DNA of 64,000 nt from Octopus sinensis (taxonomy: Eukaryota): assembly GCF_006345805.1 (NCBI RefSeq), contig NC_043006.1:86738001-86802000 (forward strand), in the 5' to 3' direction. Positions within the stretch are counted from its first letter, which is position 1, and each line of letters opens with the position of its first letter. This document shows positions 14,004-40,712 of this stretch, piece after piece. The translations under genes and the position numbers were made by a program. Below the pieces are notes generated by a model. That model was not told the origin of the DNA, did not search any database, and was given only the letters and a program-made list of their open reading frames with translations.

Positions 14004-14086
14004 TTGATGTCATATTTAACCATACTGTTTCTGAGGAATTTGGTTTCATCGATGTTACGTAAGTTAATGGAATGTACCATTTATAA
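14004..14086 (-). CDS. Internal exon of M1 aminopeptidase, phase 2-1 (YxWxIPLTY motif)
   Basis: Acceptor tctatttccag|T, donor A|gtaagt; 83 nt = (N)YKWYIPLTYVTSMKPNSSETVWLNMTS. The phase joins the previous exon (AA|T = Asn). Confidence 0.88.
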
Positions 14087-16392: not shown

Positions 16393-16687
16393 TTCCTTCT
16401 CGAGCCATGCCTGGCTCATAAGGGCCAGTTTCCCGGTTTCCTTGGCGTATAGGTTCCCCACCTGGACGGGACGCCGGTCCATCACAGGTGAGCTGCAAGG
16501 TGCAGGAGGAAAGGGTGAGAGAAAGTTGTGGCAAAAGACTCAGCAGAAGTTCACCATTACCTTCTGCCGCAGTCGAGTGGAGCTTAGGCGTTTCACTCAT
16601 AAACACACACATCGCCCGGTCTGAGATTCAAACCCGCAATCCCTTGACCGCGAGTCTGCTGCTCTAACCACCAGGCCATGTGCCTCC
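16393..16687 (-). mobile_element. tRNA-derived SINE family 3 with gatggaccggcgtcccgtccagg domain
   Basis: tRNA-like head shared with 7475-7697 but a different 3' half. Confidence 0.7.
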
Positions 16688-19270: not shown

Positions 19271-19434
19271 TTGTATGGTGAAGGTTTCAGATGAGAAATA
19301 TTTGCGCTATGAAGAAATATTTCCTGAGTAGCTGTAACTGTGGTACCCTTAAGTTTTAATGTTACAAGGGGATGTCCTTTTTGCTTTGTCCAAGTATCCA
19401 TTACTGTTGCCACTGGGAAATCTGGCTCTGTTGG
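19271..19434 (-). CDS. Internal exon of M1 aminopeptidase, phase 0-2 (MDTWTxQxGxP motif)
   Basis: Acceptor tatttatag|CCA, donor AA|gtaagt; 164 nt = PTEPDFPVATVMDTWTKQKGHPLVTLKLKGTTVTATQEIFLHSANISHLKPSPY+AA. Not in the ORF track. Confidence 0.92.
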
Positions 19435-20250: not shown

Positions 20251-20428
20251 AACACTCTAGCTATCCATGTACCCACCTCCCCAAACACTCTAGCTATCCA
20301 TGTACCCACCTCCCCAAACACTAGCTATCCATGTACCCACCTCCCCAAACACTCTAGCTATCCATGTACCCACCTCCCCAAACATTCTAGCTATCCATGT
20401 ACCCACATCCACAAACACCTAGCTACCT
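20251..20428 (+). repeat. 33-bp minisatellite, ~5.5 units
   Basis: Unit aacactctagctatccatgtacccacctcccca. Confidence 0.9.
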
Positions 20429-20485
20429 GCTTACTAACCTATGTAACCACCAACCTACCCACCTGTGTACCCAATAACCTACCTG

Positions 20486-21392
20486 CGAGGTGGTACCAGA
20501 AAGTGCCCAGATTTTAAAGCTTAATAAGAAATAACTTATTTACCTAAGTTTTAACATCATCTCCTTTGAAATACTCACCTTGGCAGCAATACACCAGTCC
20601 TAGTGTTGCTGCCAGTTTTGGAATCTGACCTGGAAGTTGTTTTCTGTAAGCAAGTCAAGAACATTCTGCAATTCGTTCTTGATTTCGACAATGTTATAAT
20701 GCTGACCATTGAGCTGCCTTTTCATCTTGGGAAAGAGATGGAAGTATACAGGAGCTAAATCTGGCGAATAGGGTGGCTGCAGAAGTGATACCATACAGTT
20801 TTTGGTGAAAAACTCACAAGTGAGGAAAGCTTGGTGACAGGGTGCATAGATGTGAAGAATCCAATTCGTCATGCTCCACAGATCTCATTGATTTTGTCAA
20901 CCGTCCCCACTCAAACACTTTAAAACATTGTTGATTATCCACTGACAATCTTCATGCACAAACTGAAGAATTTTCCCTACGTTTCCAGAGGCAACACTCA
21001 TGGGAGGCCTTCGGGATTGCTCATTGTCTTCCAGGGACTTTCTTCCATTTTGAAGCACCTGTGTTACTTGAAACATTGCATACAACTCAATCATTGCCTC
21101 ATCACTATAACCTTGCTGAAGCATACTTAATGTCTCTGTAGCAGACTTCCTGTGTTTTACGCAAAATTTCATGTTGGCTCTTTGTTCCAACTTTCTGTCC
21201 ACGGCAAATATTGTACACTACACCATACATGTGATCACAGAAACATAAATTTCACAAGTTGTGATGTAGACACAGTGATATCACTGGAACATTGCCTCAT
21301 GAAGATCACTGTTACCTCTCACTCTGCAAGAATGAGCTGTCATCTGTTGGTGTGCTACAGAACTAGTCTGGGAACGTTTTGATGCCACCTAG
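20486..21392 (-). mobile_element. Internally deleted mariner of a second subfamily (EQRANxKFC type)
   Basis: TIRs cgaggtggtaccagaaagtgcccaga / tctgggaacgttttgatgccacctag+TA. N-terminal MDRKLEQRANMKFCVK...SATET and C-terminal PPYSPDLAP.YFHLFPKMK; the central catalytic part is missing. Confidence 0.9.
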
Positions 21393-33791: not shown

Positions 33792-33835
<44 letters not shown>

Positions 33836-33901
33836 TTTAGAAGCAGATACAAAGATTAAAAAATGAAACACAAATTAAAAGAAAAAAAAAACAAATCTCA
33901 C

Positions 33902-33928
33902 CTGTGTATTGTTTTTATCAGGTAAATC
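33902..33928 (-). CDS. Probable 27-nt micro-exon of the same aminopeptidase (DLPDKNNTQ), phase 0-0
   Basis: Minus strand reads tttagttttttttattttgcag|GATTTACCTGATAAAAACAATACACAG|gtgaga. It is stop-free, frame-preserving and lies between two phase-0 boundaries of the gene. No transcript evidence available. Confidence 0.6.
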
Positions 33929-35896
33929 CTGCAAAATAAAAAAAACTAAATATTAAAATAATATCAAAGTGAATTTATTAGCTAAAAAAAAAGAATATAA
34001 AAATTATATCATATCCTTCATTTATTTGATACCTTTGCTGTGCCCAGAACATGTATTTGTAAAACCAAAATATTAAACTGATATGCAATGTCAATAAGTT
34101 ACAAATAGAGTACATAATTTGATATCAAATTTCACCAACTGAACAAAGTTATAAGGTAGGTGGTCAACACTTGATATTTGTTTAATATAAGCTACTTAGA
34201 GAAGGAGATGCAGTACTCTGACCAACAATACAAGTACTTACAGAATAGTGAGATGGGACCCAGTTGATGCCCAGCCCAAATATTGTTCATAGGGAAAAAC
34301 ATGGATGTTGCACTTCATGGAGATGCACTTCAAAAGCTTTGAACAGAGCAAACTTAGCTGAAGACACCCAAAAACCTGGTGGCAATGTGAAACAGGGGTA
34401 TATTAAATATTTCGCCTGATTTAAGCATGTCTGGTATCCAGTTGGTTTTCCTACAATAAAGAATCATCCAGCCTAAGTTGAAGTCAAATCAATTATAGAC
34501 TATTTTCTGACTTGGTTACCCAAGCCAACGATCCAAATATAGATGATATTAGTCACCAGGTTTGTAACAAGAAAAATCTTATTTGGTTTGTTGCCAGGTG
34601 AAGTAGATATAAAAAAATCTCACTCAGATCTCCCCAAAGATCAAAAACAACAATCTCAGATCTACTTATAACAAATCTATCACATATCTATTCAGATGTG
34701 AAGCTAATACCCATCAAATTAATTCTAATGTGAACCAATTCTACTCTAGATCTAAGACATGGAACAGAGACAACTTAAGGTAGGAATCAAACCAAAATAA
34801 GTATCAGATCAATGAGTTACATAATCAATCACAGGAAATTTATTAGCTTATATTTAGTCCTTTGTTATAATGAGAAATATATGTACCATGACTAATGTTT
34901 CCACAGGAATTAATAACTATTTCTCAAATTCCAGATAATTAGAATATTTATTGCAATTATATGCAATGAAACAGATTACAAAGTGTTTGAATTCCCAATC
35001 CATGGCACACAATCTAATACCCCTCATCTCGACCGCTCGGTTCAAAGTCTCTCTTGACCACAAATGGCCTGAACTCTTTGCATGAACACCACCCTGTACA
35101 TAACTCCATGTCCCCCTACATGGCCTTGCTTTTTGCTTTTTGAGCCAAAATATTAACTAACTGACTAACTAACATCTCTTTGTGTCAAAATAGTCAACAA
35201 TAGCCAAGTGGTAAGAAACCCACTTTACAATCATTTAGTTCCAGTTTGGTCTAATTGTACCACGTGGGTATTGTCTTCCAATGTACTCCAGGTTAACCCA
35301 TTAAGTCCCAGAGTACTTAGATTTCTGAATATTACTTTCAAATTTTTACAGATGATTGAAAATAGGTTAAAATGAAAACAAATAATGATTAAAACTCCTT
35401 TACTTCAAGTAAAAATGGAAATATTTGGTGTCCTATTTATAGGACACCAAGACAATGTGATATAGCTTATTTAATGTTCTCATAATCAATTCCTTGTGAG
35501 TGGAACTTGTCAGATGAAGCCTGTGTGTTGTGGGATGGTGATAAGAAGTTTGTCTAACCATAGAAAATCTGTTTCAACAAATTTTGTTTTACCCATGCAT
35601 GCATGAAATATTGGACATTAAAAGGGCAATGATAATGATGATGATGATGATATAGATTATGAAAGCGTTTGCCATCAGACAGATTGCAAGTGTGACAATT
35701 AGAGCTTTGCAATTTCCAATAACTTTGTCATTTCCAGAAAATCAGAAGTATAAAACAAAAATTCCTGCCTTATCAAGAATAGGCCACTAAAAACTATGTG
35801 TGTTTACTTGTATACAAAATGGTAAAAATTACAAAATACACACACACACACACAAAATGCTTTTCTTGAATATTAAAACTATTTCAGTCAGGTTGT

Positions 35897-36755
35897 TTCG
35901 AACATTAGGTCTCACCATGGAAATGACCAGAGACCGAGACCTATGGAAGTATGCTGTGCGTGAGAAGACCCTACCTGGGACCCGTGGCCCCTACCTGGGA
36001 CGTAGTCAGTCCGCCTGTGCATACCTTCCTGCTTGTGACACTTGAGAAGACCTGTTGAGGCAAATCAAATCAAAGTCAAATCGAATCAAGTCAAACCAAA
36101 TCAAAATAGATGAACATCAATGGAATTTGTATCCTTGTGGTACCAGTGCCGGTGGCACATAAGAAAACCATCCGAACGGGACCGTAGCCAGTACCGCATC
36201 GACTGGCCTCCGTGCTGTGGGCACGTAACAAACACCGTCCGAGCGTGGCCGTCTGCCAGCCTCGTCTGGCACCTGTGTCGGTGGCACATAAAAACACCAT
36301 CCGAGCGTGGCCGTCTGGCACCTGTGTCGGTGGCACATAAAAACACCATTCGAGCGTGGCCGTCTGCCAGCCTCGTCTGGCACCTGTGTTGGTGGCACAT
36401 AAAAACACCATCCGAGCGTGGCCGTCTGCCAGCCTCGTCTGGCACCTGTGTCGGTGGCACATAAAAACACCATCCGAGCGTGGCCGTCTGCCAGCCTCGT
36501 CTGGCACCTGTGTTGGTGGCACATAAAAACACCATCCGAGCGTGGCCGTTCGCCAGCCTTGTCTGGCACCTGTGTCGGTGGCACATAAAATCACCCACTA
36601 CACTCTCGGAGTGGTTGGCGTTAGGAAGGGCATCCAGCTGTAGAAACACTGCCAGATCTGACTGGCCTGGTGCAGCCTTCGGGCTCCCCAGACCCCAGTT
36701 GAACCGTCCAACCCATGCTAGCATGGAAAGCGGACGTTAAACGATGATGATGATG
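35897..36755 (+). mobile_element. Heavily 5'-truncated RTE copy (ORF end plus 3'UTR with expanded minisatellite)
   Basis: Starts with RTLGLTMEMTRDRDLWKYAVREKT as in the 23520-23600 copy; shares the 3' terminus ccatgctagcatggaaagcggacgttaaacgatgatg. Confidence 0.85.
36239..36590 (+). repeat. 62-bp GC-rich minisatellite, six units (one 49-bp deleted unit)
   Basis: Unit ccgagcgtggccgtctgccagcctcgtctggcacctgtgtcggtggcacataaaaacaccat starting at 36239, 36301, 36350, 36412, 36474 and 36536. Confidence 0.95.
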
Positions 36756-40580: not shown

Positions 40581-40712
40581 CGATGAGAGCATTTCCCATA
40601 AATCCTTAGTTTCTGCATTTAAATATGGAAATTTTTTCAGGTAATTACATACCCTTTTCCTGAAACGTTCCTTTCCCAAGAATTCTTGTAACATATTCAG
40701 AATACTAGCTCC
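40581..40712 (-). CDS. Internal exon of M1-family aminopeptidase (ERAP/LNPEP/APN-like), phase 0-0
   Basis: Acceptor ttcttag|GGA, donor TCG|gtaagt; 132 nt = GASILNMLQEFLGKERFRKRVCNYLKKFPYLNAETKDLWEMLSS, matching the M1 helix following SYxK (K-G-A-x-I-L-x-M-L...YL...Y.N....DLW). Confidence 0.92.

Follow-up and report, generated by a model that had tools for sequence, protein, structure and literature searches.

We propose that a segment of 27 nt, lying on the minus strand within an interval of 21 kb between two larger exons, is a genuine coding micro-exon of an M1 aminopeptidase gene of the ERAP/oxytocinase-like type in an octopod-like cephalopod. Together with the splicing, the surface loop and the glycan proposed below, we regard this reading as very likely correct. 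Two independent criteria, the strength of splice signals and the similarity to an insert in an orthologous protein of Argonauta hians, lead to the same 27 nt. The micro-exon and the neighbouring parts of its gene are situated in the window (the whole stretch of 64 kb that was analysed) as follows.

40712..40581, minus strand: upstream exon of 132 nt and 44 aa, GASILNML...DLWEMLSS, i.e. GASILNMLQEFLGKERFRKRVCNYLKKFPYLNAETKDLWEMLSS, with a phase-0 end at TCG/gtaagt
33955..33929, minus strand: 3' splice region of the micro-exon, with candidate branch point ttaAt (A at -25), U-rich tract and ttgcag
33928..33902, minus strand: micro-exon of 27 nt, GATTTACCTGATAAAAACAATACACAG, encoding DLPDKNNTQ in phase 0-0 with an N-N-T sequon
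33901..33896, minus strand: 5' splice site of the micro-exon, CAG/gtgaga, donor 7.9 bits
19434..19271, minus strand: downstream exon of 164 nt, PTEPDFPVATVMDTWTKQKGHPLVTLKLKGTTVTATQEIFLHSANISHLKPSPY.., with a phase-0 start
14086..14004, minus strand: next exon, ..N YKWYIPLTYVTSMKPNSSETVWLNMTS, its acceptor at 14086 agreeing with the A. hians protein

Micro-exons are defined by a length of at most 27 nt, or up to about 30 nt in some versions of the definition. In its minus-strand context the segment reads tttagttttttttattttgcag / GATTTACCTGATAAAAACAATACACAG / gtgagatt, that is, 27 open nucleotides bordered by ...ttttttttattttgcag on the 5' side and by gtgaga on the 3' side. It has the length of a micro-exon, the borders gcag/ and /gtgaga, no stop codon and a size that preserves the frame. 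Because the boundaries of both flanking exons are in phase 0, the reading frame stays intact whether the 27 nt are included or skipped. The introns on the two sides measure 6,652 nt (6.65 kb) and 14,467 nt (14.5 kb). The coordinates, frame, intron distances and sequon given in the earlier note all proved correct on re-reading of the minus strand. The candidate branch point ttaAt was picked out by eye from its fit to the yUnAy consensus, and an extra AG is present at -19/-18, 6-7 nt from it.

The identity of the host gene follows from the flanking exons. The upstream exon (40712..40581) represents the terminal part of the Peptidase_M1 catalytic domain, and the downstream exon (19434..19271) opens with tatag/CCA ACA (PTEPDFPVATVMDTWTKQKGHP) at its 5' end and translates as PTEPDFPVATVMDTWTKQKGHPLV.... 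When the exons are joined into a spliced window model of 135 aa, Pfam Peptidase_M1 (PF01433) matches it with 38.9 bits (cut-off 27.7) over profile positions 162-218 of 218. Among solved structures, the flanking exons score best with ERAP2 and ERAP1 (E ~2e-15), followed by PSA, APN and IRAP. No exons with GXMEN or HEXXH were found in the window upstream of 40712, and no exons past 14004 were found in the window using the C-terminal part of the Argonauta protein. A word-indexed protein search with the 108-aa spliced peptide gave no matches, the index being apparently too sparse for a short query.

In order to rate the splice signals, AG and GT sites were scored with a rough weight matrix, which was built from general consensus frequencies and not trained on cephalopods. 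On this scale the micro-exon reaches 7.5 bits for the acceptor and 7.9 bits for the donor, and three undoubted nearby exons score lower (acceptors -1.0 to 5.2, donors 4.7 to 4.9). The 21,146-nt interval contains three acceptors and three donors that score at least as high as those of the micro-exon, and the sole pair of them within 300 nt is the micro-exon itself. No other acceptor/donor pair in the whole 64 kb reaches such strength when both strands are considered (128 kb scanned). First-order Markov simulations of the intron yielded an equally strong pair in 1 out of 300.

In one alternative reading, the segment would be a pseudo-exon, an AG...GT pair enclosing an open frame by chance in a long AT-rich intron and never or rarely spliced in. 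Long introns are indeed rich in decoys, and at lax thresholds the same intron gives 253 acceptor/donor pairs, 19 of which are open and frame-preserving. With 19 such decoys at hand, the mere presence of signals does not count and only their strength does; it is in strength that the pair is unique in the 128 kb of scanned strand. A second argument against a pseudo-exon comes from the Argonauta protein described below.

The rough matrix also pointed to several other sites in the gene. The second-strongest pair on the gene strand (8.7 + 7.4 bits) encloses 31 nt at 16492..16462, minus strand, between the exons at 19.3 kb and 14.1 kb. It is not frame-preserving and is missing in the Argonauta protein; as far as the letters tell, it may be either a decoy or possibly a frame-breaking exon. 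Another fairly strong AG..GT pair, 20482..20463, is not frame-preserving either and adjoins a tandem array at 20251-20425 (33-nt unit, 5.4 copies, 93% matches). The exon at 14.1 kb possesses two in-frame acceptors, 14113 and 14086, exactly 27 nt apart. Acceptor 14113 (ctattag/T) outscores 14086 in the rough matrix (4.2 against -0.2), and its use would add FENNSSISS with further N-x-S sequons. The acceptor that agrees with the Argonauta protein is 14086, the downstream one. The two acceptors may constitute an alternative 3' splice site.

Of the proteins in the libraries searched, GAB1601075.1 from A. hians (hypothetical protein Ahia01_000385700, partial) is the closest; it was found by an exhaustive HMMER search in which the 44-aa upstream exon alone served as the query. 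It reads ...DLWEMLSL DGPEQNRSQ STEPDFPVATVMNTWTKQ..., with a 9-residue insert exactly at the micro-exon junction. The spliced window model including the micro-exon aligns with it over 135 aa without any gap at 73% identity, which divides by exon into 70% for the upstream exon, 44% for the micro-exon, 73% for the downstream exon and 89% for the next exon. The two inserts, DLPDKNNTQ and DGPEQNRSQ, are equal in length and position, with four of nine residues identical and seven of nine similar.

Such similarity between nonapeptides has to be judged against the number of competing segments. With a BLOSUM62 score of 24, DLPDKNNTQ is the single best counterpart of DGPEQNRSQ among all open 9-mers, which number 12,625 in the intron and 75,198 in the window (both strands). 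When only the 52 open candidates of the form AG..27nt..GT are compared with DGPEQNRSQ, the micro-exon scores 24 and the runner-up 6. The matches at D1 and Q9 are partly favoured by the splice consensus (ag/G.. and CAG/gt), but no such bias applies to the inner P, the acidic residue, N or S/T. The segment of the window that most resembles the Argonauta insert occurs at the same junction, with equal length and with the sequon kept. Together with the unique strength of the splice pair, this makes the chance pseudo-exon highly improbable in our view, and we retain the genuine micro-exon as the preferred reading.

The annotation of A. hians was produced by merging ab initio, RNA-seq and homology evidence (PMC12682272). 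Whichever of these sources supplied the insert, a segment matching it exists in the A. hians genome, where the gene ranges over 324 kb. To judge from the equal lengths of the segments, the insert would be encoded there by a separate 27-nt exon as well. The zinc motif of M1 aminopeptidases, HEXXH-X18-E, is intact in the ortholog (HEFAHQW...WLNEGFA), and its residues 50-55 read LAGMEN, i.e. the exopeptidase motif appears as AGMEN where GAMEN is usual. With the Argonauta protein as the query, no other cephalopod orthologs were found in the libraries, the next best match being 43% identical; the case for conservation accordingly draws on one relative. Within this scope, splice-signal statistics and the matching 9-residue insert of A. 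hians uphold what the earlier note had claimed, namely a real frame-preserving coding micro-exon, and show it to be conserved, with its sequon and as a peptide, in another cephalopod. Its further opinion that annotation pipelines would easily miss the exon is contradicted for the one relative checked, whose deposited protein already has the insert.

The AlphaFold model of the A. hians fragment (81-sequence alignment) has a mean pLDDT of 93.5. Its sole low-confidence block, residues 221-230 with a mean of 52, spans most of the insert (residues 219-227) and the immediate continuation. The loop is flanked by one helix at 209-217 (DLWEMLS) and another at 235-243 (ATVMNTWTK), and the model thus places the insert where it had been expected, in a flexible loop linking the DLW and MxTWTxQ helices. 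The loop from W of DLW to M of MxTW comprises 14-25 residues in 80 homologs (mode 14) and about 40 in ERAP1/2. In the window gene it has 25 residues when the micro-exon is included and 16 when it is absent, and both lengths are structurally ordinary.

The micro-exon carries an N-x-S/T sequon, as claimed initially, which reads NNT here and NRS in the A. hians ortholog. The position x is not P, and the sequon is located on an exposed segment, the lowest-confidence loop of the model. Sequons inside the loop between DLW and MxTW occur in 19 of the 80 homologs. The 135-aa model contains four sequons in total, and three of them are also found in A. hians, at positions 50 (NNT/NRS), 98 (NIS/NIT) and 132 (NMT/NMT); such a density of sequons, most of them common to both species, would fit a glycoprotein. 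The N-terminus lies beyond the window and is absent from the partial ortholog, so that a secretory-pathway topology, and with it glycosylation, is presumptive. Relatives of ERAP/APN type are luminal or extracellular.

A possible course of events can be outlined as follows. Amid the 21-kb interval, the exon would probably be recognized because the splice sites at both its ends, 3' and 5', are unusually strong. Branching at ttaAt at -25 is plausible, and the AG at -19 would stay unused because it is too near to the branch point. In-frame splicing would then connect the micro-exon with the 132-nt exon ...DLWEMLSS on one side and with the exon beginning PTEPDFPVATVMDTWT on the other, and we infer that the 27 nt are included in the octopus mRNA. 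As a result, the flexible surface loop that closes the catalytic domain would gain nine residues, growing from 16 to 25. An extra N-glycan at the asparagine of NNT would be the most likely effect, provided that the enzyme is luminal or extracellular.

The same exon could also be a regulated cassette, possibly tissue-specific and SRRM-type (eMIC) dependent, which switches the loop glycan. Several features are compatible with such a role: 27 nt is within the usual range of micro-exons, the symmetric phase 0-0 lets the frame survive skipping, and the loop of 16 residues left after skipping is within the family norm (mode 14). Further, a strong 5' splice site is combined with UGC immediately before the AG (ttUGCag), and a UGC placed between the branch point and the AG is a typical mark of micro-exons that depend on SRRM3/4 (bioRxiv 10.1101/2024.09.17.613571). 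This UGC, however, overlaps the ordinary CAG consensus of acceptors and therefore carries little information, and the compact and strong 3' site is unlike the weak, distant arrangement of regulated micro-exons (bioRxiv 10.1101/2024.09.17.613571). Moreover, the sole annotated ortholog includes the insert, and an aminopeptidase is an atypical host for a neural micro-exon. We therefore consider the regulated cassette possible, yet rather doubtful.

With animal micro-exons in general (3-27 nt) the octopus exon shares its size of 27 nt, preservation of the frame, a strong 5' splice site, location in a surface loop and long flanking introns. It differs from typical ones in its host, which is a peptidase and not a protein of neuronal signalling or trafficking, and in its strong compact 3' splice site.

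Other kinds of element were considered for the segment and rejected. A poison or decoy exon does not agree with a frame-preserving segment that is free of stop codons and whose peptide is conserved. A recursive-splicing site is rejected as well, the acceptor AG being followed by GATTTA and not by a GT donor motif. Structured RNA is rejected on the basis of zero Rfam matches across the window. Origin from a dispersed repeat or a transposon is rejected in turn, for only the (TA)n run at approximately 33797-33832 recurs elsewhere in the window.

The long introns harbor several further features. Inside the 14.5-kb intron, at 20603-21217 on the minus strand, there are open stretches (…PPYSPDLAPVYFHLFPKMKRQL…), which we take to resemble the C-terminal part of mariner/Tc1-type transposases. 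Pfam gives no match to this stretch at E<=0.01, so that any transposase there would be a degraded remnant. At 36263-36595 a unit of 62 nt is repeated in tandem (4.6 copies, 95% matches), and this array overlaps a row of 49-nt period; on the gene strand it has long open frames and several weak pseudo-exons. Between 22001 and 24000, within the long intron, GC content amounts to 0.49, compared with about 0.35 in other parts, and both GC skew and AT skew are positive.

The intron in which the micro-exon resides can be compared among relatives, since annotated proteins were aligned back onto their own genomic loci. In the ERAP gene of a fish (Aldrovandia), a 44-aa, 132-nt exon GACILNML...DLWNTIAN precedes a 23-aa, 69-nt exon of phase 0-0, TSSEREFSTGGFCYTFSQAEKRA, and then comes NGYTCENLDLREMMDTWT.... 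In the acorn worm Saccoglossus the same 44-aa exon is followed directly by SGENGEDKVIVKDVMDTWT. In the fish and Saccoglossus genes, this 44-aa exon has the boundaries of the upstream exon of the window. In the snail Bulinus, the intron is positioned about one codon later and the small exon is absent; in the APN-like genes of Haliotis (abalone), Limulus (horseshoe crab) and a spider, the intron is at the same place and no small exon was mapped there. Being common to the bilaterian M1 genes examined, the phase-0 intron is old and widely shared. Small symmetric exons within it are found only in vertebrate ERAP and in octopods among the sampled lineages.

The 'exon 10 loop' of ERAP1/2 is non-conserved and flexible, with 23 residues in ERAP2, and residues 486-513 were deleted in ERAP1 crystal constructs (PMC9065437). 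It is stabilised by a pair of cysteines and has been implicated in ER retention via ERp44 (PMC9065437). The literature (PMC9065437) and the map of the fish ERAP gene, with the same intron, agree with the earlier note, which had spoken of ERAP1, in that vertebrate ERAP1/2 have a short exon 10 loop at this very place, connected with ER retention. The octopus micro-exon is likewise a short phase 0-0 exon in the same intron, after a 44-aa exon that ends about 5 residues past DLW, and it likewise encodes a flexible loop after the same helix of domain II. The layout is also the same, for the small exon of fish ERAP follows the 44-aa exon and precedes the MDTWT exon. The size is different, 69 nt (23 aa) in vertebrate ERAP and 27 nt (9 aa) in octopus, and so is the content: whereas the vertebrate loop has a cysteine pair for the disulfide and ERp44, the octopus exon has a conserved N-x-S/T sequon and no cysteine. 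Cysteine is found neither in DLPDKNNTQ nor in DGPEQNRSQ. The ERp44-type mechanism of retention is thus not transferable to the octopus exon, and a retention role of that type is rejected for it.

One may ask whether the two small exons descend from a single ancestral exon that was lost in other lineages. They share the same phase-0 intron, 5 residues after W of DLW, both are of phase 0-0, and it is with ERAP2 and ERAP1 that the flanking exons of the window score best among solved structures. The exons themselves speak against it. No likeness of DLPDKNNTQ to the fish TSSEREFSTGGFCYTFSQAEKRA or to the ERAP2 loop is evident in the alignments and in exon sequences read by eye, the cysteine pair is missing, and the lengths are unequal (27 against 69 nt). 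In addition, the intron lacks a small exon in Saccoglossus, Bulinus, Haliotis, Limulus and the spider, and several independent losses would be needed. Common ancestry is thus improbable in our estimate. Because the small exons are dissimilar and none occurs in the other lineages examined, they are best read as parallel acquisitions; the octopus micro-exon and ERAP exon 10 are probably analogous and of independent origin.

Taken together, the micro-exon is a tidy but fairly ordinary detail of gene structure, and current knowledge of M1 aminopeptidases and of micro-exons is unchanged by it. An exon of 27 nt in an interval of 21 kb was found correctly by a tool-free reading of splice signals, and this gives a useful check on how cephalopod genes are annotated when their introns are very long. 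For the family, it means that the loop known from exon 10 of ERAP1/2 is extended in octopods too; the ancient intron is the same, but the small exon is a separate one, and a glycosylation motif replaces the cysteines. The idea that new small exons have remodelled one surface loop in parallel thereby becomes testable. As a speculation to which we give little weight, the old phase-0 intron behind DLW might be a recurrent birthplace of small symmetric exons, with the loop remodelled independently in ERAP1/2 (69 nt, cysteine) and in octopods (27 nt, glycan); in the same scenario, the octopod exon may also act as a cassette that switches the loop glycan and thus affects secretion, retention or partner binding of the enzyme.
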